From IMG/VR virus record IMGVR_UViG_3300028840_006257, positions 149,011-213,010 of that record: a DNA stretch of 64,000 nucleotides; one strand, given 5' to 3'. A program made the position numbers and the translations under genes. The notes under the pieces were generated by a model, which did no database searches, was not told the DNA's origin, and was given only the letters and a program-made list of their open reading frames with translations. Below are positions 2,030-45,106 of this stretch, in pieces (positions within the stretch are counted from its first letter, which is position 1; each line of letters opens with the position of its first letter).

Positions 2030-3703
2030 ATGCCCAGGACACCCGTGGAGGTCGCGACGGGAAACGACCTGCGCCGGAGGATGCTCGACGGAGTCGCGGA
2101 GATGGTCCGGGCGGTCGCGGCGACTTACGGCCCGTGCGGCCGTACGGTGATGCTCGACCGTCCCGGTGGCCTCCTCTCCACGAAGGACGGGGCGACCGTG
2201 GCGTGGGAGATCGAGCCCGCCGACCCGGCGCGGCGCCTCGGGACCCGCGTCGTGCAGGAGGCGTGTGCCGAGGTTGACCGTGCCTGCGGAGACGGCACGA
2301 CGACGACGGCCATCCTCGTTCATGCCATCCTCGAGGAGAGCTTCCGGTGGGTGGCTGCGGGCGCGCATCCGGTCCTCCTCGCGAACGACCTCCGGGTGCT
2401 GGCCGAGAACATGGTGAGGTGCGACCTCTTCGACGTCGCGTGTCCCGAGCCCGTGGAGGACGAGGCCCAGATGCGGGAGATCGCTCTCGCGGCCTGCGAC
2501 GCGGACGCGGAGCTGGCCGACGCGGTCGTTGACGCCCTCGGTCGAGCGGGCTCCGAGGGCATGGTGATCATCGAGCAGGGAAGGGGGCGTGGAGTCGAGG
2601 TCGAGCACAGGCGCGGCACGGAGCTCGACCGGGGATGGGAGAGCAGCGACCTAGCTGGCCCCGACGGATCCCCCAGGCTCCTCGAGGTCCCCCTCGTCGC
2701 TCTGGTCGACGGCGTGCTCGACTCGCTCGAAGACGTCCGCACGCTGCTTGAGGAGGCGACCCAGTTTCCCCACCCCCTCCTCATCGCGTCGCGCGGGTGC
2801 TTCGGGCCGGCACTCCAGACCGTCGTGACGAATGATCGCAGGTTGATGCGCTCGGACGGGGGGACGTTCGAGGTCGTCGCCGTCAGGATTCCCGGACACG
2901 AGGGGGGCGCGCGTGACCTCCTCGAGGACGTCGCGGCGCTGGCGGGCGCGACCGTGGTCGACCCGAGCGTGACCTCGCCGGGCGCGTTCCGGTCGGAGAT
3001 GTTCGGCTCGGTCCAGACGGCCACCGTGCGGGCCGAGAGCACCACGCTGATTGCCTTCGAGGACAGGTTCCCGCTGATCGAAGCGCGCGTCGAGCAGCTG
3101 CGTCGCGCCGAAGGCGAGGCGGTGCACACTCATGACGCCGAGGAGATCCGCACCAGGATCGCGAAAATCACGGACGGGCTCTGCGTGATGAGAGTGGGAG
3201 GATCGACCGACGCGGAGATTCGTGAAAAGAGAGGACGAGTCGAGGACGCGCTGAGCGCCGTGCGTCTCGCGGTCGAGCGCGGCGTCGTTCCGGGCGCCGG
3301 AGTCGCGTACCTGGCGCTGGGCGAGTTCTTCGCGGGGGCGCTTCGGTTGTCGGAGACGACGGCAGCGCATGGACGCCCTGACCTGAGCGTGGCGGGTCTC
3401 GGGGCGAAGGTGCTCGCCAGGGCGCTCAGGGAACCCCTCAGGAGGCTGGCCCGAAACGCGGGTCACGAACCCTCGGTCGTCGAGCGACGCGTCCTGAGGG
3501 CGTCTGAGGAGCCTGGGATGTCTCCGTGTCCCTCCTGGGAGGCGGGATGGGACGCGACGACCGACGAGATCCGAGATTTGCGCCGCGCACCGGCTCTCCG
3601 AGACCCTCTCGGCGTGGTCGAGTGCGCCGTGCTCACCGCGATCTCCGCCGCCTCGACGCTGCTCACGGCGGAGGTCGCGCTCACCCGGAAGGAACGATCA
3701 TGA
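2030..3703 (+). CDS. groL: GroEL-like (Cpn60) phage chaperonin
   Basis: TYGPCG, TKDGATVA, GDGTTT, VGGST..E, VEDAL, GVVPGAG and DP..V motifs; divergent, no GGM tail. Confidence 0.9.
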   Translation: MPRTPVEVATGNDLRRRMLDGVAEMVRAVAATYGPCGRTVMLDRPGGLLSTKDGATVAWEIEPADPARRLGTRVVQEACAEVDRACGDGTTTTAILVHAILEESFRWVAAGAHPVLLANDLRVLAENMVRCDLFDVACPEPVEDEAQMREIALAACDADAELADAVVDALGRAGSEGMVIIEQGRGRGVEVEHRRGTELDRGWESSDLAGPDGSPRLLEVPLVALVDGVLDSLEDVRTLLEEATQFPHPLLIASRGCFGPALQTVVTNDRRLMRSDGGTFEVVAVRIPGHEGGARDLLEDVAALAGATVVDPSVTSPGAFRSEMFGSVQTATVRAESTTLIAFEDRFPLIEARVEQLRRAEGEAVHTHDAEEIRTRIAKITDGLCVMRVGGSTDAEIREKRGRVEDALSAVRLAVERGVVPGAGVAYLALGEFFAGALRLSETTAAHGRPDLSVAGLGAKVLARALREPLRRLARNAGHEPSVVERRVLRASEEPGMSPCPSWEAGWDATTDEIRDLRRAPALRDPLGVVECAVLTAISAASTLLTAEVALTRKERS

Positions 3704-35228: not shown

Positions 35229-35321
35229 TGGCGAGCGAGGAGGGATTTGAACCCCCGATGGGACTTGCGTCCTCTGGATTAAAAGTCCAGTGCGTTCGGC
35301 CAGGCTACGCGTAACTCGCCC
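35229..35321 (-). tRNA. tRNA-Lys(UUU) with long variable arm and encoded CCA
   Basis: GGGCGAG/CTCGCTC-G-CCA; CTGGA-CTTTTAA-TCCAG; GGAC-GCAA-GTCC variable arm; TTCAAAT loop. Confidence 0.85.
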
Positions 35322-37665: not shown

Positions 37666-38358
37666 TCAGGCCCTGCGCCTCTCGTCGAGGATGGCTTGGA
37701 TGGCCCGGAAGCGACGGTTGCTCTCCTCGGCGAGCTCGTCGAGGCTCATGGGGACGATCTCGCGCTCGAGCCACGCCCCCAGGCTCTGCGGGGCCTCGGC
37801 CGGAGGGACGCCGAGGTGCAGATAGTGAGGTTTCACGGAGAGGAGCTGCCGCACCATCGGTCGGCTGTGGGTCGTGACGAACACGCCCCTCGTCTGCTCG
37901 GGAAGATCGGCCACGAACTCGGCCACGACCGTTCCAGCTCCGGCCGCGGCCGCCTCCCCCATGCCGATGTCGGGCTCGTCCCAGTAGAGGAGGTGCGAGT
38001 GCGTCCGAGCTCGGCACGTGCTGATGGCCGTCCTCACCGTCATTCCCGAGTTCTCTCCGGTGGAGCGGAAGCCCTCGTCTCCGTAGACGAAGCCCTTCAT
38101 CGCCCCCATCATGTTCATGCCGGCGCGGGCCTCCATGCTGAGGTGGATGACCTCCTTGATGGAGGTGTGGCTCTTGGCCGACGCCTGAACGCAGCGTCGG
38201 AAGAAGCTCTTCCCGCTCGCGTTCTCTCCGAGCACGAGGAAGAGGGGCGACGACCCCTTCACCCAGAGGGCCGGGATGGCGGGTTCGTCGCCGACGAAGT
38301 ATCGCCAGCTACCGAGGATGTTTCCGACGATCCAGAGGCCGGTGCTCGGCTTGCTCAT
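37666..38358 (-). CDS. stand-alone ABC-type ATPase
   Basis: GENASGKS, STGE signature, WDEPD, VTTHS. Confidence 0.8.
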   Translation of the reverse strand: MSKPSTGLWIVGNILGSWRYFVGDEPAIPALWVKGSSPLFLVLGENASGKSFFRRCVQASAKSHTSIKEVIHLSMEARAGMNMMGAMKGFVYGDEGFRSTGENSGMTVRTAISTCRARTHSHLLYWDEPDIGMGEAAAAGAGTVVAEFVADLPEQTRGVFVTTHSRPMVRQLLSVKPHYLHLGVPPAEAPQSLGAWLEREIVPMSLDELAEESNRRFRAIQAILDERRRA

Positions 38359-39197
38359 CGGTCTCCTCCGTCGAACAGGAGGATCCGGTCGAGCATGGCC
38401 GCCGGGAACCTGCGTCGCAGGATCTCCTCGGCCTCCTCGCGCGAGTGCTTCATGGACCTGTGCGTGAGCACGAGATAGTCGCCCTCGAATTTCTCGCAGT
38501 GCTCGGCCATCTCGGCCACGTGCGTGTGGCCGTAGCGCCGCGCGCCCTCGACGTTCGCGTCGTCCATCTCCCAGGTCGTGACCTCGTGGACGAGCACCTT
38601 GGCCCTCCGAGCCCTCTCGTGCTCCAGCAGGAAGTCGATCCGGGTGTCGCCCGAGACCACCAGGAGGGTGCTCACCACGTCGTCCGTGACCTGCACGCCC
38701 TCCCGACGGAGGCGCCCTATCTCGGAGCCCTCCATGCCGACGAACTCGGTCTTGAGCTTGCTCGTGGTGCGGTCGACGCCCCACCCGAGCGACGCCCCCC
38801 GGTGCCAGCTCCGCATCGCGTGTACGACCGCGCCGCGTCCGAGCTCGAAGAAGTAGCCGGGCCTCGCGGGGTAGAGGCGAACCTTCGCCTCGTGCTCGCT
38901 GTCCCGCTGCACGTCGCGCATCGCCTCGAGGAGCCTCTCCATCGGCTCGCCGAGCTCGTCCGGTAGGTAGACGCTCAGCGTCGCCTTGTTGCGCCGAATG
39001 GAGCGCAGGCTCACGATGTACGGGAGCGCCGCCACGTGGTCCGCGTGACCGTGGGTCAGGAAGACGTGGTCGACGGTCGCCCCTGGCACCGCGCCCGCGT
39101 CGAACACAGCGCGGATCTCGGGGACGTGGAACGCCGTCTGGCAGCCGCCCTGGGCGAACCCGTGCAGCGTCACGCCGCCTATGCTGATCTTCTCCAT
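38355..39197 (-). CDS. RNase Z-like metallo-beta-lactamase
   Basis: FDAG, THGHADH, SGDT, HEVT, GHTH, LTH.S. Confidence 0.85.
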   Translation of the reverse strand: MEKISIGGVTLHGFAQGGCQTAFHVPEIRAVFDAGAVPGATVDHVFLTHGHADHVAALPYIVSLRSIRRNKATLSVYLPDELGEPMERLLEAMRDVQRDSEHEAKVRLYPARPGYFFELGRGAVVHAMRSWHRGASLGWGVDRTTSKLKTEFVGMEGSEIGRLRREGVQVTDDVVSTLLVVSGDTRIDFLLEHERARRAKVLVHEVTTWEMDDANVEGARRYGHTHVAEMAEHCEKFEGDYLVLTHRSMKHSREEAEEILRRRFPAAMLDRILLFDGGDR

Positions 39198-39239
39198 GAT
39201 CACCTGCACGGGGCGTTCGTGAAATTTACAGAACCCCCG

Positions 39240-39932: not shown

Positions 39933-40090
39933 TCATAGGGGACTTGCCGTTTCCAGACACCGGGTTCGGTGGAGATCGTCAACCAGGGCTCGATTCTACA
40001 TATCAATCGTCGTCCCCTGCGCTGCTTGACTCCGTCCACTATCGGGCGGTGTTGGGCCGCGGGTGTTCGCCGCGGAGGTCTCCTTTCGTC

Positions 40091-40399
40091 TCAGTGGTAG
40101 TCGTCCCAGATCTCGATGGCCCTCTCCGGCATCTCGTCCCCTTGGACCAGGTCCCAGAAGTCGCGGATGCCATTCCTGGAGAGGATGATTCCGGAGAGGA
40201 ACCGCGAACCGTCACCCGCGCCGAGCTCATCGGCCCACTCGAGTACCTCGTCCAGGCTCTCGAAGTCTCGGACGTGCCACGCCAGCTCCTGCACCTCGTC
40301 GGTCTGCTTCTTGTGGCGGAAGATGCCCTTCTGCCCCGTGCAGCCGTCGGTGAGGACGGGGTTGCCGCTCGTTCTCTTGACCGCGAATCGCATCGGCAT
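40091..40399 (-). CDS. hypothetical protein
   Basis: AGGAG RBS; about 100 aa. Confidence 0.6.
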   Translation of the reverse strand: MPMRFAVKRTSGNPVLTDGCTGQKGIFRHKKQTDEVQELAWHVRDFESLDEVLEWADELGAGDGSRFLSGIILSRNGIRDFWDLVQGDEMPERAIEIWDDYH

Positions 40400-40414
40400 C
40401 TCCTGGGCTGCGTG

Positions 40415-40455
40415 AAAGGAAACCCCGGAAGCCTCTCTCGAGGGGGCGTCCGGGG
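40415..40455 (-). terminator. probable terminator closing the ncRNA cluster
   Basis: CCCCGGA..TCCGGGG hairpin followed by TTTCCTTT. Confidence 0.55.
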
Positions 40456-40466
40456 ACGGGAAAGTT

Positions 40467-40618
40467 GGTCAACGCCGAGTGAAGAACCTTGATCGCGTTT
40501 TCACGCCAGATTTACACGTCTGGTGGCTTTTCCAATTTGCCTACCCCGCCGTGTGGTGGCGGGGGCTGGACTCGAACCAGCAAGGTTTGCTTGTGAGGTT
40601 GATCTGCGGGCGTTGACC
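40467..40618 (-). ncRNA. motif RNA D enclosing a circularly permuted tRNA-Tyr-like body (Y-RNA-like)
   Basis: GGTCAACGCC/GGCGTTGACC outer stem; order T-arm, acceptor hairpin with ACCA loop, D-arm, anticodon arm, variable arm. Confidence 0.75.
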
Positions 40619-40626
40619 TAAAGGGT

Positions 40627-40758
40627 AGAAGCGACCGAGTTGAAAGGCTGTTTGATGCAAGGAGCAGGACTTGAACCTGCGACCTTCGGTTTGTCGAACC
40701 GACGCTCAAGCCAGCTGAGCTGTCTTTGCTTGTGAGCCTGACCTTGGTGGTCGCTTCT
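40627..40758 (-). ncRNA. motif RNA C enclosing a tRNA-Val(GAC)-like body (40656-40729)
   Basis: AGAAGCGACC/GGTCGCTTCT outer stem, AGGCT/AGCCT inner stem, full cloverleaf inside. Confidence 0.75.
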
Positions 40759-40890
40759 TGGTGGCGGACCCTGGAGTCGAACCAGGTTGCTTGTGGACCT
40801 TCAACGGGTGCCTCTCCGGGAGAGGTGAGTGTTGTTGTCGGTTTTACCGATTTACCGTCGGGTGACCCCCCGCCGGGGTCTTGGTCCGCC
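40759..40890 (-). ncRNA. motif RNA B: tRNA-like RNA (GTA loop) with about 60-nt insert in the variable region
   Basis: GGCGGAC/GTCCGCC-A-CCA; CCTGG-TTCGACT-CCAGG; CCGA-CGGTAAA-TCGG. Confidence 0.7.
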
Positions 40891-40902
40891 GTGTTGTAGG
40901 TA

Positions 40903-41014
40903 GTTCCGAGAGCGTGGTCTTGCTGGCTTCAAGACCCCGACCCTCTGGGGTCGGGGATGCGCTTGTAGGACCTGCGCGTTTGGCTTTGATCCTCGAGGGA
41001 GGTTAGCCAGGAAC
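40903..41014 (-). ncRNA. motif RNA A (no tRNA body)
   Basis: GTTCC/GGAAC ends, AGGTC-CTACAAGC motif, strong hairpins. Confidence 0.5.
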
Positions 41015-41026
41015 AGCCGAGAAAGG

Positions 41027-41055
41027 AGTCTGGGGCAGCGCAGAGCCGTTGTCAA
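41027..41055 (-). promoter_or_regulatory. sigma70-type promoter for the ncRNA cluster
   Basis: TTGACA-17-CAGACT. Confidence 0.7.
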
Positions 41056-41064
41056 CCCCCTTTC

Positions 41065-41637
41065 TCAGATTTTCTCGACCCGCGCCGGCGAGATCGAGTA
41101 CCCCACCTTCCGGCGCGTCTGGACGAACTGCTGGACCGCGAGCGCGAGGAAGGCGCTCACGACTTGGATGAAGGGGAGAAATTCCCCCTCTTCGCAGGTG
41201 GCAGCCCCCGCCACGTCCTCGTCGTCGACCACGAAGTCCTCCTCCCAGATGATCCTCCCGTAGCCACCGTCGGCCGCGAGGGCCCCGTGGAGGCACGGGA
41301 CTCCGTTCGCGCGGGCGAAACCCTGGACGAGCCTGCGAGCCTCGCCGTTGTCTAGGCAGTCGACGAGGAGCTCGGCGCCGCCCAGGAGCTGGGTCGTGTT
41401 GTCGGCCGTGAGCTTGTGGCCCACGACGTCGACCTTGCGACCGAAGCAGAACTGCATGGCTCCCCGAAGCGCCTCGGTTTTCTTCTTGCCCACGCCAGCC
41501 CTCAGGTGGAACTGCGAGGCGACATTCTTCATCTCGACCCTGTCGAAATCCACGAGGGTCAGAATCACCTTCTCGTTCCGCAGGGCCTGAACCAGGTGCG
41601 AGCCCAGGGCGCCGGCTCCGACGATCGTGATCTTCAC
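41065..41637 (-). CDS. ThiF/MoeB/E1-like adenylyltransferase
   Basis: IVGAGALGS, DFDRVE.KN..SQ, GK.K, VDCLDN..AR, ATCE. Confidence 0.9.
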   Translation of the reverse strand: MKITIVGAGALGSHLVQALRNEKVILTLVDFDRVEMKNVASQFHLRAGVGKKKTEALRGAMQFCFGRKVDVVGHKLTADNTTQLLGGAELLVDCLDNGEARRLVQGFARANGVPCLHGALAADGGYGRIIWEEDFVVDDEDVAGAATCEEGEFLPFIQVVSAFLALAVQQFVQTRRKVGYSISPARVEKI

Positions 41638-41849
41638 GGCACGGTCCTCGCGTTTACGCTCCGCAGCTTTTTCCACTCGCCCTCGTGGAAACGGCAGTAG
41701 TGATGTTTGACGTTCACCTCGAGGCCGTCCTCCGTGCTTCGGATGTCGTGCGTGGGGATGACGATCCTGTCTCCCTCGATCCTGGCGCCGAGCACGGCGA
41801 GCATCTCCTCCAACCCCGGAGTGCATTCTCCCAGACGTTCGATGATCAT
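41634..41849 (-). CDS. hypothetical protein
   Basis: AGGAGG RBS; GTGA overlap with the E1 gene. Confidence 0.6.
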   Translation of the reverse strand: MIIERLGECTPGLEEMLAVLGARIEGDRIVIPTHDIRSTEDGLEVNVKHHYCRFHEGEWKKLRSVNARTVP

Positions 41850-42856: not shown

Positions 42857-43383
42857 GGCTTGTCTCCCTTCAGGATCGTCGTCCGTATCCCCGCAGGAAG
42901 AAGCGCCTCGGGGCGCTCGAAGAACCACCCGAACAGCGGGAAGGGGGTTTCCCAGTCACGCCGGACGAGCACGAGGTCTTCGCCGGGGGCCGTCCTGTCC
43001 ACGCTGATCTCGGCGAACTTCACGAAGGGCCTCTGCTCCCGCTGGAACATGACCACGATGCCTTCGAAGTCGAACATCACGTACTCGGCGTAGATGTCAC
43101 GCCAGAAGGGAATCAGGGCGGCTACGAAGGCTTCGATGGACGAGTAGTTCCCCACCGATCCCCACGTGAACATGTCGCCCCTGGGACCGGCCCCGACGCC
43201 GTGCCCCTCGACGACGTACCGGAGCATCCGATGGGCGTCCGCGTTGTACCCGTCCTCCGCCGAGGGATACGGCGTGGACTCTTTGAGCGCCTCCATGATC
43301 TTGAGCTGTCGGCGCGCGCACACGAAGAGCTTCGCGTCGCTTCTGACCTCGAACTGGACGGTGATGTTGCAGCAGACGCTCAT
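42853..43383 (-). CDS. hypothetical protein
   Basis: ATGA overlaps on both sides. Confidence 0.65.
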   Translation of the reverse strand: MSVCCNITVQFEVRSDAKLFVCARRQLKIMEALKESTPYPSAEDGYNADAHRMLRYVVEGHGVGAGPRGDMFTWGSVGNYSSIEAFVAALIPFWRDIYAEYVMFDFEGIVVMFQREQRPFVKFAEISVDRTAPGEDLVLVRRDWETPFPLFGWFFERPEALLPAGIRTTILKGDKP

Positions 43384-44192
43384 ACGCCTTTCTTCTTTCG
43401 CAGGGCCCTCTCAGGGGGCCAGCCTTTCAGGAGACGGTAGCGAATCGTGGTGCTGCTCAGGCCCGTCTCTTCGGCCCAAGCAGCGAGGCATTGAATTTTT
43501 CCGAAGGCCCGAATTTCCCGGTTGTTACGACGATTGCGTGCCTGTTCTTTGCGAGTCGCCCACCGGACGTTTCCAGGTCCGTAGTCCCCATCGATGTCTA
43601 GCCGATCGAGCGTGTGGTGGGGGCTCGGGGAAGGTCCCATGTCTCGTAAAAAGTTGGCGAACGACGTGATCCAGGGTTCGTGGATTCCAATCCCACGACC
43701 TCCGTAATTTTCGTACCCCATGGCTTGCGGATCTAGGCACCTCTTTTTCATTGCGTGCCATGAATTCCACTCAGGTCTCCCCCACCCGCCGTGGATAGTC
43801 GCCGTTTTCCTCAACCTCTCGGCGGCCACCTCCTTGTTCAGACAGCCGCAGGATTTCGTTTTTTCGGCAAGCAAATCGTATCGCCAGATCCACCTTTCCG
43901 CGCCACAAGAGTAGCGACACAGCACCCATTGACGTTCATTCCTGAGAACGGTGAGACGGTGAAAGACAGTGCCCTGCGGGATGGAGACGGTCTTCGAGTG
44001 CTTCTTCCACTTCTCCTGAAGTTGCTGACGTCGCAGGCATCCGCAGGACTTGCTCGCTCCCCTGACGAGATTGCAGCGACGAAACGTCATTGACGTTCCG
44101 CACTCGCAGAGACACAGAACGTCCTTGTAGCCTCGGTCTTCCATGACAGTCAGACGGCCGAAGCGCTCCCCGCTCTCTAAACGTGTCGCCAT
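43380..44192 (-). CDS. free-standing HNH homing-endonuclease-like protein
   Basis: Two G..F.RLTV..C..SKSCGCL repeats; W..MK.RC, YGGRGI, LDR.D.DGDY.P.NVRWAT..EQ..N; lower GC. Confidence 0.85.
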   Translation of the reverse strand: MATRLESGERFGRLTVMEDRGYKDVLCLCECGTSMTFRRCNLVRGASKSCGCLRRQQLQEKWKKHSKTVSIPQGTVFHRLTVLRNERQWVLCRYSCGAERWIWRYDLLAEKTKSCGCLNKEVAAERLRKTATIHGGWGRPEWNSWHAMKKRCLDPQAMGYENYGGRGIGIHEPWITSFANFLRDMGPSPSPHHTLDRLDIDGDYGPGNVRWATRKEQARNRRNNREIRAFGKIQCLAAWAEETGLSSTTIRYRLLKGWPPERALRKKKGV

Positions 44193-45106
44193 ATCACCAG
44201 CTTGCCTTCTCTCACGGCTTGCCGAATGATAAGGGGCAGGCTTTCCAATGTAAAGTAGGTGTCGTAGGACTCCTCCGTGGCGTGGTCGGTGAGGCACACG
44301 CCCGCGTCGATGATGTGGAGGTTCGTGTCGCAGACGCACTCGAGGCGCTGGCCGTCGACGCGGTACTTCACGGCCCACTCTCCGCGACGGACCCTGCGGT
44401 GGTCGAGGTAGTCGGCTCCTCCCACTTGGAGCGCGGCCCTCGCAGCCTCGGCGAAGTTCTCCTGAGCCATGGCGCGTCGGGTGGCGCCGTCCCCGAGTCG
44501 TTCGCGGAGCTCGGCACGGCGCTGCTCCCGGAGCCTCCGGGCCTCCTCCTCGGCACGTCGCCGGGCGATCTCCTGCCGACGCAGCTCGGCCTGCTCGCGT
44601 CGGTACGTCTCCATGCGGAAGGCGGCGTCGAGGGCCGGGACGACGCCGGGAATCCCGGTCACGTCCTTCTTCCCGTCGAGGTAGGCGTCCATGACCTCGT
44701 TCTCGGGACCGAGCGGGAACGCCTGCTCGAGGAAGATGAGGGGGCCCTCTGGATAGATCCTCCCGGCCCGCACTCGGGAGAACCTGTCGAGCTCCTCGGG
44801 GATGAGGTGGACCCTCTCCGAGTGTCCCACGATCGTGGCGGGATCCGGGTCCACGCGGACCTCGTCGGAGACGATCCGGTCCCCGACGAGGTACCCGGTG
44901 ACAGGATTCCTGAGGATCTCAGGCACCGGCTCGGCGCTCTCGAAACTCGTGGCCGTGTTGCCCTCGATCCTGAACCGATACCACCCGAACTCGCGCAGGC
45001 GGCTCCCCAGCTTGAAGGTGCGGGAGTCCGAGTGGAGGGACGCGCCTCCCGTCCAGGGAAGGGTGACGGTCTCCGCGCCGCCGGCCAAGAGGTCCCTCCA
45101 TCCCAT
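44177..45106 (-). CDS. protein with candidate C-terminal E2/UBC-like domain
   Basis: LHIIDAGVCL..YDTYFTLESLPLII resembles UBC G.ICL..W.P..T; operon context. Confidence 0.5.
   Translation of the reverse strand: MGWRDLLAGGAETVTLPWTGGASLHSDSRTFKLGSRLREFGWYRFRIEGNTATSFESAEPVPEILRNPVTGYLVGDRIVSDEVRVDPDPATIVGHSERVHLIPEELDRFSRVRAGRIYPEGPLIFLEQAFPLGPENEVMDAYLDGKKDVTGIPGVVPALDAAFRMETYRREQAELRRQEIARRRAEEEARRLREQRRAELRERLGDGATRRAMAQENFAEAARAALQVGGADYLDHRRVRRGEWAVKYRVDGQRLECVCDTNLHIIDAGVCLTDHATEESYDTYFTLESLPLIIRQAVREGKLVIWRHV

Follow-up and report, generated by a model that had tools for sequence, protein, structure and literature searches.

Can a tRNA whose parts are encoded out of order still serve as a tRNA and, if not, what would a phage do with it? 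This question is raised by an RNA element on the minus strand of a 64,000-nt stretch of DNA (the window), which covers positions 149,011 to 213,010 of the IMG/VR virus record IMGVR_UViG_3300028840_006257. The window is the last 64 kb of this 213-kb record (65% G+C), which is ~40% complete according to CheckV, implying a phage of roughly 500 kb. ARAGORN finds 15 tRNA genes in the record, all on the minus strand of the window and grouped into two islands, and the element lies in the first of these. When the minus strand is read from 40581 to 40491, the 3′ third of a tRNA comes first, followed by the 5′ two-thirds. A sequence-only reading had called this a complete, permuted, tRNA-Tyr-like gene, and all of the parts it listed are present. 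Comparison with relatives indicates that the element is a member of a sizeable family, selected for the whole permuted cloverleaf and the helix that closes it. As to function, the reading that we favour, with about even confidence, is that of a phage-encoded, non-coding RNA of ~152 nt that takes part in the phage-host conflict over tRNAs by mimicking a tRNA, either as a decoy or as a substitute, with the window's subgroup probably being opened to a nicked, CCA-ended form. The parts of the element, in RNA order, are:

40467..40618, minus strand: whole permuted tRNA-like RNA unit, from the P1 5′ strand through the P1 3′ strand, ~152 nt
40609..40618, minus strand: P1 5′ strand, GGUCAACGCC (DNA GGTCAACGCC), pairing with 40467-40476 over 10 bp
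40604-40603, minus strand: P1b, GA, 2 bp
40600-40596, minus strand: P2 5′ strand, AACCU, pairing with P2′, AGGUU, at 40489-40485
40588..40597, minus strand: invariant single-stranded motif CUCACAAGCA, between P2 and the T arm
40582, minus strand: invariant U on the 5′ side of the T stem, probably U48
40565..40581, minus strand: T arm, GCUGG-UUCGAGU-CCAGC
40558-40564, minus strand: acceptor 3′ strand, CCCCGCC, of the 7-bp acceptor hairpin
40557-40554 and 40553-40551, minus strand: ACCA and then the linker CAC, closing the acceptor hairpin
40550-40544, minus strand: acceptor 5′ strand, GGCGGGG
40524..40543, minus strand: U8 and A9, the D arm GGC-AAAUUGGAAAA-GCC at 40541-40525 (DNA loop AAATTGGAAAA) and A26
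40506..40523, minus strand: anticodon arm, CCAGA-CGUGUAAA-UCUGG (DNA loop CGTGTAAA), with an 8-nt loop containing GUA
40491..40505, minus strand: variable arm, CGU-GAAA-ACG (hairpin 40505-40494), then CGAUC (ATC at 40493-40491)
40482-40476, minus strand: conserved UCACUCG, among the 3′ closing strands (40467..40489)
40467-40476, minus strand: P1′ 3′ strand, GGCGUUGACC (DNA GGCGTTGACC), pairing with 40609-40618

The fold is a complete class-II cloverleaf with rotated connectivity. Its acceptor is closed by a short loop (ACCA-CAC in the window). The 5′ and 3′ ends of the RNA exit from the variable region, where the short variable arm lies on one side of them and U48 on the other, and they pair into a long bipartite helix, P2 plus P1. 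The closing junction runs through P2, a 2x2 loop, P1b, a 4x4 loop and P1. This multi-branch structure is also the minimum free energy structure returned by RNAfold for 40630-40455 (−61.5 kcal/mol, z = −4.07), and 0 of 200 shuffled sequences were as stable. When the parts are rejoined in tRNA order, ARAGORN reports an 88-nt class-II tRNA with a 4-base anticodon, tgta (Thr/Tyr). In the native order, neither ARAGORN nor Rfam detects the element, except for a sub-threshold match to YrlA. The elbow nucleotides G18 G19 and T54-C56 are present, as are U8 and A15/U48. Two features had gone unstressed in the sequence-only reading, namely the 8-nt anticodon loop and the doubly paired flanks. In addition, the permutation junction, which had been placed at 48/49, more likely lies at 47/48, because the U before the T stem is invariant and the D loop carries A15, which would pair with U48.

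The strongest evidence for this fold comes from covariation. Alignment A1 contains nine sequences (the window and eight diverged relatives) in 162 columns, and the structure has 40 pairs: P1 10 bp, P1b 2, P2 5, T 5, acceptor 7, D 3, anticodon 5 and variable 3. Standard pairs are found in 97.8% of the cells and both sides change in 19 of the 40 pairs, a result reached by 0 of 500 column shuffles. When the 3′ partners were slid by 1-3 columns, pairing was 23-46%, with only 1-3 double-change pairs, and RNAalifold, using A1 alone, returned the identical 40 pairs. A second alignment, A2, holds 29 distinct sequences and is fitted to the covariance model R1 that was built from A1, so that it leans toward the model; here, 95.4% of the cells are paired and 38 of the 40 pairs are compensatory. 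Across these alignments, compensatory changes are found in all seven helices. For P1 there are double changes in 4 pairs in A1 and in 9 of 10 in A2, and the P1b/P2 helix is 100% paired with 2 compensatory pairs in A1, while 5 of the 5 P2 pairs covary in A2. The acceptor has compensatory changes in 6 of 7 pairs (A1) and 7 of 7 (A2), and A73 is invariant in A1, as are the columns of CUCACAAGCA. Pairs 50-64 and 51-63 of the T stem and pairs 29-41 and 31-39 of the anticodon stem covary. The D stem, which has the 3 bp of the class-II type, is compensatory in 2 of its 3 pairs, and the GG of its loop is invariant. The loop of the variable arm is GNRA in most relatives, either GAAA or, in L389, GUAA. 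The flanking stems proposed earlier are thus real and would be able to hold the two parts together.

R1 matches the window element with 172.2 bits (E about 1e-48) over all 157 model positions, and this is the one copy (172 bits) in the phage's own 213 kb. The element has every feature of the model in order: P1/P2, CA(A/C/U)GCA, T arm, capped 7-bp acceptor, D arm, anticodon arm and short variable arm. A motif-based scan gave 22 IMG/VR loci (mostly contigs of 300-620 kb) and 17 contigs of metagenome-assembled genomes, in which R1 finds 26 further full-length matches of 50-186 bits. The scores are 154-186 bits in close relatives and 50-110 bits at >20 further loci, again mostly on IMG/VR contigs of 300-620 kb. 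Tandem copies occur in L389 (two), L391 (two), L396 (two) and L377 (four to five). It is the covariation, together with the R1 matches across phages, that argues for selection on the whole fold.

The arrangement is also not a product of assembly, which had been named beforehand as something that could refute it. Logan contigs from three DNA runs (two from sediment, 2018, and one from seawater, 2021, one of which may be the window's source sample) cover 40000-41300 contiguously with 0 differences. A further, near-identical strain is represented by L356:95-252 (minus strand), where the sole difference in the element is A63 to U. The same runs contain a second, more abundant contig, which aligns only to 40461-40618, that is, to the element and its closing stems. 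The relative that it represents was recovered as L389, an IMG/VR contig of 497 kb. In the contig from the runs, the anticodon arm is the same as that of the window, a tandem second copy is present in the alignment, and there are differences from the window at 21 positions, with the differences listed being compensatory pairs:

40548/40560, minus strand: acceptor pair 3-70
40545/40563, minus strand: acceptor pair 6-67
40566/40580, minus strand: T-stem pair 50-64
40540/40526, minus strand: D-stem pair 11-24

Three other readings of the locus were rejected. An attP-type tRNA 3′ fragment is out, since the locus has the 5′ part as well and shows internal conservation. A T7-like promoter, suggested by CTCACAAG, is out, since the upstream sequence is not conserved and the flanks covary as RNA. 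Finally, an overlapping open reading frame (ORF) of 65 aa at 40512-40709 is out, since the substitution pattern is that of an RNA.

Relatives were reached by two routes. A 20-nt pattern from the 3′ closing strand led to two JGI metagenome contigs: the near-identical L356 and a true relative, L355, where the element follows a ThiF/E1-like gene as it does in the window (the protein is 72% identical). Further relatives were found via homologues of the ThiF-like protein and then their contigs. In L357/L358, L359/L360, L363, L364, L365 and L366, the window-type layout lies directly downstream of the ThiF-like gene and comprises a promoter-like site, an "empty" unit, one to two pairs of a long tRNA-like RNA and a regular tRNA, the permuted element and a GC hairpin with a U tract. 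The ThiF proteins of the phages compared are 66-82% identical. Several other searches gave nothing of use. In the INPHARED phages, megablast for close relatives returned only tRNA-Met matches; the neighbouring 102-aa ORF had no match in IMG/VR; exact D-arm and closing-stem patterns had 0 matches in IMG/VR; and matches to an ACAARCAA..GGTTCGA pattern were almost all random coding sequence. Generic T-loop/ACCA/TAG patterns gave, among the matches listed, mostly tandem tRNAs, and also L067, L163, L165 and L212.

The L212 element (L212:426-584, minus strand), on a low-G+C IMG/VR contig, has the same permuted architecture with long closing stems (64.7 bits with R1), a canonical anticodon loop of 7 nt that is Leu(UAA)-like, and ACCA-ACAU. 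The units near it share leader and trailer motifs of their own (UACAAAC..., ...GAACUUGGACG). On L377, a 4.5-kb contig binned as Polyangiaceae, four permuted elements alternate with odd tRNAs at 2065-3240, and one has the loop CUUUAGA, whose anticodon UUA is complementary to the ochre stop codon. A separate observation concerns the Gordonia phages Fryberger (L001:1470-1900) and GodonK (L002:1440-1870) and the related IMG/VR contigs L163 and L165, which have unannotated RNAs of ~450 nt beside their tRNA arrays. Each has two modules of T arm, capped acceptor and D arm plus a terminator; the first module reads ACCA-CAN, and that of GodonK has G3-U70.

Is the element, then, a tyrosine tRNA? For one subgroup, the likeness holds. 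Six diverged phages, including that of the window, have an 8-nt loop, CRUGUAAA (CAUAUAAA in L403), a 7-bp acceptor and a linker of 3-5 nt. In these, the variable arm is kept, and G1-C72 (6/6), A73 (5/6), U35 (6/6), G34 (5/6) and NCCA (5/6) are present. These are the identity features of bacterial tRNA-Tyr. Across the family the likeness fails. Elements at orthologous positions have unrelated loops, such as CUAUAGA, AUUCGGA, CAUGAAA and many more, and the family's "anticodons" include GAA, GCA, CGU, UGU, CAU, UGG, UAG and UUA. The discriminator and acceptor do not track the anticodon, as GCA is found with A73 or with C73. The acceptor caps vary from 4 to 25 nt, being UUCG or 5 nt in some copies. 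Of the 29 distinct copies, 14 have NCCA after the acceptor 3′ strand (1/64 is expected by chance), although the regular tRNAs of the array have no encoded CCA. Because the loops differ among orthologues, half of the copies are without CCA and some have UUCG caps, the family as a whole appears to be a tRNA mimic with a closed acceptor rather than a gene for tyrosine tRNA. Normal tRNA sets are present in the host phages as well, and that of L377 includes a normal tRNA-Tyr.

The element does not stand alone but is the last unit of an RNA operon, the order of which is a promoter-like site, an empty cassette, a long tRNA-like RNA, a tRNA-Val, the permuted unit and a terminator-like hairpin. The operon and its surroundings in the window are as follows:

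43380-44378, minus strand: HNH endonuclease (phrog_374, E = 4e-61), among small ORFs upstream of the ThiF-like gene
41065-41826, minus strand: ThiF/E1-like adenylyltransferase, always just upstream of the RNA operon
41027..41055, minus strand: promoter-like TTGACA-17 nt-CAGACT, right after the stop codon of the ThiF-like gene
40895-40970, minus strand: first ("empty") cassette after the promoter, with only the motif CUACAAGCGCA, two hairpins and CGCUCUCGG
40759..40890, minus strand: long, non-permuted tRNA-like RNA, 132 nt, with a free ACCA end and an internal capped arm with CACUCA ... CACAAGCAA
40628..40757, minus strand: regular tRNA-Val(GAC) unit, tRNA at 40656-40729, with leader-trailer helix GAAGCGACC/GGUCGCUUC plus AGGCU/AGCCU
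40415..40455, minus strand: terminator-like hairpin CCCCGGA...UCCGGGG plus a U-rich tract, directly after the element, at the end of the operon
38355..39209, minus strand: RNase Z homologue, 284 aa, metallo-beta-lactamase fold, inside the tRNA island and 1.3 kb from the element

The site at 41027..41055 is probably the start of the operon, a sigma-70-like promoter. At the equivalent place, TTGAC(A/T/G)-17 nt-(C/T)A(G/A)NNT is found in 8 of 8 relatives, with a spacer that varies in sequence. GC hairpins with a U tract likewise lie 3′ of the element in L357, L363 and L365. A promoter/terminator scan tool made no minus-strand calls; it missed both sites because the −10 hexamer falls below its consensus threshold and the terminator loop exceeds 8 nt. 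In L366 (3117-3263), the slot of the first cassette is filled by a second permuted element. It is Arg(ACG)-like and belongs to the class-I type, and R1 scores it at 58.9 bits.

The flanking stems, too, belong to the operon. Every regular tRNA of the arrays is enclosed in the same way: a leader, GAAGCGACC ... AGGCU-CACAA, is followed directly by G1, and the trailer is AGCCU-UUCAACUC-GGUCGCUUC. These leader-trailer helices covary between phages, as in GAAACGGCC/GGCCGUUUC and GAAGUGACC/GGUCACUUC. The 3′ closing strands of the permuted element resemble the trailers of the operon's regular tRNAs and, judged by sequence, its flanking stems are the standard leader-trailer module found around every operon unit. 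The invariant single-stranded motifs are CUCACA(A/C/U)GCA (5′ side) and UCACUCG (3′ side). A motif of the CUCACAAGCA type heads every operon unit in the relatives, and in regular units the 5′ end of the tRNA lies inside it, between CACAA and GCA. YACAARCAA occurs three times in 64 kb, each time in this 210-nt stretch, against 0.22 expected. A shared cassette with invariant motifs suggests a processing or binding factor.

The long tRNA-like RNA looks like the non-permuted counterpart of the permuted element. Its acceptor is GGCGGAC/GUCCGCC, a 6-bp GC hairpin takes the place of the D arm, the T arm is normal and the anticodon arm, CCGA-CGGUAAA-UCGG, has G at position 33 and a GUA loop. Twelve homologues were found, and 21 of 32 predicted pairs are compensatory. 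Between the anticodon and T arms, its internal arm has the order CACUCG, hairpin, CACAAGC. The motif-bearing arm therefore occurs in three places. In ordinary tRNAs it sits on the acceptor end; in the long RNAs, which have an open acceptor (ACCA), it is closed and lies within the variable region; and in the permuted RNAs, which have a capped acceptor, it is open and again in the variable region. By the order of their motifs, the long and the permuted RNAs are circular permutations of one design.

Several neighbouring genes can be mentioned here. Within the window, the element's neighbours are the ThiF-like gene, tRNAs and the 102-aa ORF. The ThiF/E1-like gene product is probably about 190 aa in reality. 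In L359/L360 and L364-L366, the genes before the ThiF-like one are a Prok-JAB-like ORF, another ORF of ~92 aa and one for a VWA protein, and this neighbourhood resembles an E1/JAB/small-protein set. Near the position of the window's HNH gene, relatives have HNH or LAGLIDADG genes. The RNase Z homologue matches RNase ZS1 (PDB 7xgt, E = 5.8e-43), tRNase Z (1ww1, E = 1.6e-15) and, below their cut-offs, the NCBIfam RNase_Z models; the L366 array is also near a Lactamase_B gene. Cassettes orthologous to the tRNA-Val unit keep a GCAAAG scaffold in the relatives and have the anticodons CGC, GAU, ACG, GCU, AGU, CAU, AUC and CGU; several have A34 or are without U33. At 35233-35320 (minus strand), an Rfam tRNA match of 38.9 bits was missed by ARAGORN; it has a class-II body, a long variable arm and the anticodon loop CUUUUAA (UUU).

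How might the RNA work? On the favoured reading, the acceptor hairpin of the window's subgroup would be cut by host RNase P just before G1, i.e., between 40551 and 40550, and 3′ trimming, possibly by exonucleases, would expose the CCA. The phage RNase Z homologue is a candidate 3′-end processing enzyme, which would act mainly on the CCA-less relatives. There is a precedent in Mycobacterium smegmatis, where RNase P cleaves the 7-bp acceptor hairpin of YrlA, both in vivo and in vitro, and CCA is then added (PMC4201824). The acceptor hairpin of the window, with 7 bp, A73, an encoded CCA, a 3-nt linker and G+1, is of the kind that is cut there. In the window subgroup the product would be a nicked, two-piece look-alike of tRNA-Tyr, held by the acceptor stem, elbow contacts and P1/P2. 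The anticodon loop would be a variable, selected surface on a constant scaffold, and the RNA would work against enzymes that read the anticodon loop, whether as a decoy or as a nuclease-resistant substitute, and not as an ordinary decoder. This interpretation is preferred because the loops are hypervariable and uncoupled from the identity elements, and because the acceptor is sometimes capped by a tetraloop. Phage tRNAs do counter anticodon nucleases, including a retron effector that degrades tRNA-Tyr (PMC11555353).

A number of points weigh against the mimic. About half of the family is without CCA, so an open acceptor end is not a family-wide requirement. The cutting of a 7-nt closed loop by RNase P would be an extrapolation from the YrlA of one organism, and loop hypervariability is the sole source of the decoy idea. 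The search for sequencing runs with the element gave no RNA run. The A63 to U change in L356 leaves a U-U mismatch in the T stem, and the A2 statistics come from a model-fitted alignment. Searches of the 213-kb record for TROVE, RtcB, two RNA-ligase families (that for T4 Rnl1 having no positive control), a CCA-adding enzyme and class Ib aminoacyl-tRNA synthetases found none; as the record is ~40% of the genome, the absent Ro60, ligases and tyrosyl-tRNA synthetase (TyrRS) may lie elsewhere.

Other explanations make different use of the same facts. If the two pieces were to form a decoding tRNA-Tyr, charged by TyrRS after RNase P cleavage and 3′ trimming, then the gene would be a genuine permuted or split tRNA gene, which we regard as unlikely but far from negligible. 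The leader and trailer would possibly be removed, and such a tRNA might resist a host tRNA-Tyr nuclease or use its 8-nt loop to read four bases. The complete cloverleaf with its elbow nucleotides, U8 and A15/U48 is in keeping with this, as are the tRNA-Tyr identity features of the window subgroup, the lack of a regular tRNA-Tyr among the 15 ARAGORN tRNAs of the 213-kb record and the adjoining long RNA with its GUA loop and free ACCA end. Moreover, bacteria already use a permuted, two-piece acceptor RNA in the form of two-piece transfer-messenger RNA (tmRNA). However, the 8-nt loop is non-canonical, so the element is not a standard Tyr decoder, and the loops at orthologous positions are unrelated without a matching change in acceptor or discriminator. 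Tetraloop caps in some members, a ~17-bp P1/P2 arm in the variable region that may not fit the ribosome, the failure to find TyrRS, a CCA-adding enzyme or an RNA ligase in the 213-kb record, and the normal tRNA-Tyr of relatives such as L377 all point the same way. The wider claim, that huge phages have the first permuted or split tRNA genes to be found among bacteria and viruses, their RNAs being two-piece, CCA-ended, opened by RNase P and RNase Z, charged and used by the ribosome, is likewise unlikely. The tmRNA itself is out: pair 3-70 is C-G or G-C and not the G3-U70 of alanine identity, there is no tag, ARAGORN (which detects permuted tmRNA) makes no call and an Rfam E-value search gives no match.

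Were the acceptor to stay closed, the RNA could be a scaffold of the Y-RNA kind, tethering a P1/P2-bound protein to a tRNA-binding partner much as YrlA does with Ro60 and PNPase; this we judge improbable. The succession of T arm, capped acceptor and D arm is the topology of YrlA, part of the family has capped acceptors (UUCG and others), and the invariant single strands beside the closing helix look like a protein-binding site. The Rfam YrlA model also has its best sub-threshold match here, but this model (RF02553) gives 24.5 bits (E = 0.023) over model positions 29-81 only, against a gathering score of 69, which is level with a plain tandem tRNA-Phe pair (23.4 bits). The Ro60 motif, GNCGAAN0-1G, is absent from the 5′ strands of all nine A1 sequences, where the bases of P1 covary freely (GGUC becoming GAUC or GACC with compensation). 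No TROVE (rsr) match was found in the 213-kb record, which is incomplete, so that a distant rsr is possible, and no TROVE gene was found in the Gordonia phages with similar modules. The same helix and motifs also flank ordinary tRNAs, where their removal is required. Identification as YrlA or another bacterial Y RNA was rejected on all three counts of score, Ro60 motif and TROVE gene, with the anticodon and variable arms kept. A classical permuted pre-tRNA of the Cyanidioschyzon/Thermofilum kind, in which leader and trailer are cut, the circle is ligated and then opened at the acceptor loop to give a continuous tRNA, has the same layout of 3′ part, linker and 5′ part with leader and trailer paired beside the junction, and host RtcB ligases are common among bacteria, as seen in the control of the RtcB search. 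It is nevertheless very improbable, and as an identification it was rejected. The junction has no bulge-helix-bulge (3-4-3) motif, bacteria are not known to have a splicing endonuclease (10.1101/312249), searches of the 213-kb record found neither RtcB nor an RNA ligase, and a conserved single strand of 12-15 nt (CACAAGCA...) between P2 and the T stem would need precise removal. Least credible of all is the idea that the locus is an assembly artefact or a dead remnant, left when a pair of duplicated tRNAs in tandem lost its outer parts. The island has many tandem tRNAs, for example two tRNA-Phe genes 1 nt apart, tandem dimers mimic YrlA in model searches (PMC4201824), and duplication followed by deletion is the likely evolutionary origin. 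Yet compensatory changes in all seven helices, among phages whose ThiF proteins have diverged as described, rule out a decayed dimer, the homologues are too diverged to have been copied from one another recently, the position in the operon is conserved, there are >25 copies, and independent assemblies give the identical sequence.

What is the significance of such a family? To our knowledge, the only permuted tRNA genes on record are those of a few algae and one archaeon, the nearest things in bacteria being YrlA and two-piece tmRNA, and our literature search found no description of permuted tRNAs or such tRNA mimics in phages. The covarying family found here, with >30 complete permuted cloverleaves from tRNA islands in very large phages, is apparently undescribed. 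It escapes the standard tRNA finders and no Rfam family covers it, and R1 lets annotators find its genes. The family points to viral tRNA mimics of a new class, in which a constant scaffold bears a hypervariable anticodon loop, as is expected in an arms race with tRNA-targeting enzymes, and it provides natural substrates for RNase P, RNase Z, CCA-adding enzyme and aminoacyl-tRNA synthetases acting on capped or nicked tRNAs. Should the RNA be used in translation after all, the window copy would be a tRNA-Tyr with an 8-nt loop, which might escape an anticodon nuclease or promote four-base or +1 decoding, and the leader-trailer cassette would be a new processing signal for phage tRNAs.

Among known systems, YrlA (RF02553) is alike in being a tRNA mimic in which the T arm comes first, then the acceptor hairpin and the D arm, and whose RNA ends pair into a long stem. 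The likeness is greatest for the actinobacterial form, in which a 7-bp acceptor is cut by RNase P and given CCA to yield a two-piece RNA (PMC4201824). YrlA lacks an anticodon arm, as had been stated beforehand (bioRxiv 10.1101/312249), and it has no variable arm either; its closing stem replaces the anticodon stem and carries GNCGAAN0-1G, and its gene is beside rsr, on the same strand and within about 4 kb. In contrast, the anticodon and variable arms of the element are intact, and its closing stem, which probably exits at 47/48, is also found on ordinary tRNAs in the operon. In Cyanidioschyzon merolae, other algae and Thermofilum pendens, the permuted tRNA genes are alike in having the 3′ part upstream, a short acceptor linker, leader-trailer pairing and a full cloverleaf on rejoining. 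Those, however, are genes of eukaryotes and archaea that use a bulge-helix-bulge endonuclease, a ligase and a circular intermediate, and they have matching identity elements and 7-nt loops. The element is from a bacteriophage, with no bulge-helix-bulge and no ligase found, its family's loops are hypervariable or of 8 nt, and many copies are without CCA. Two-piece tmRNA (in alpha-proteobacteria, some beta-proteobacteria and cyanobacteria) shares the permuted gene, the acceptor piece first and a two-piece RNA held by base pairing, whereas the element has a canonical D arm and neither a tag reading frame nor pseudoknots. The final comparison is with the anti-defence tRNAs of phages. Mycobacteriophage tRNAs reportedly include anticodon-loop variants that counter tRNA-targeting defences. 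In phage T5, tRNA-Tyr counters the PtuAB effector of retron-Eco7 (PMC11555353). The element shares with these a phage tRNA island and altered anticodon loops, and the Tyr-type loop of the window's subgroup fits the logic of such an arms race, but the anti-defence tRNAs are ordinary, contiguous and chargeable, whereas the element is permuted and capped.

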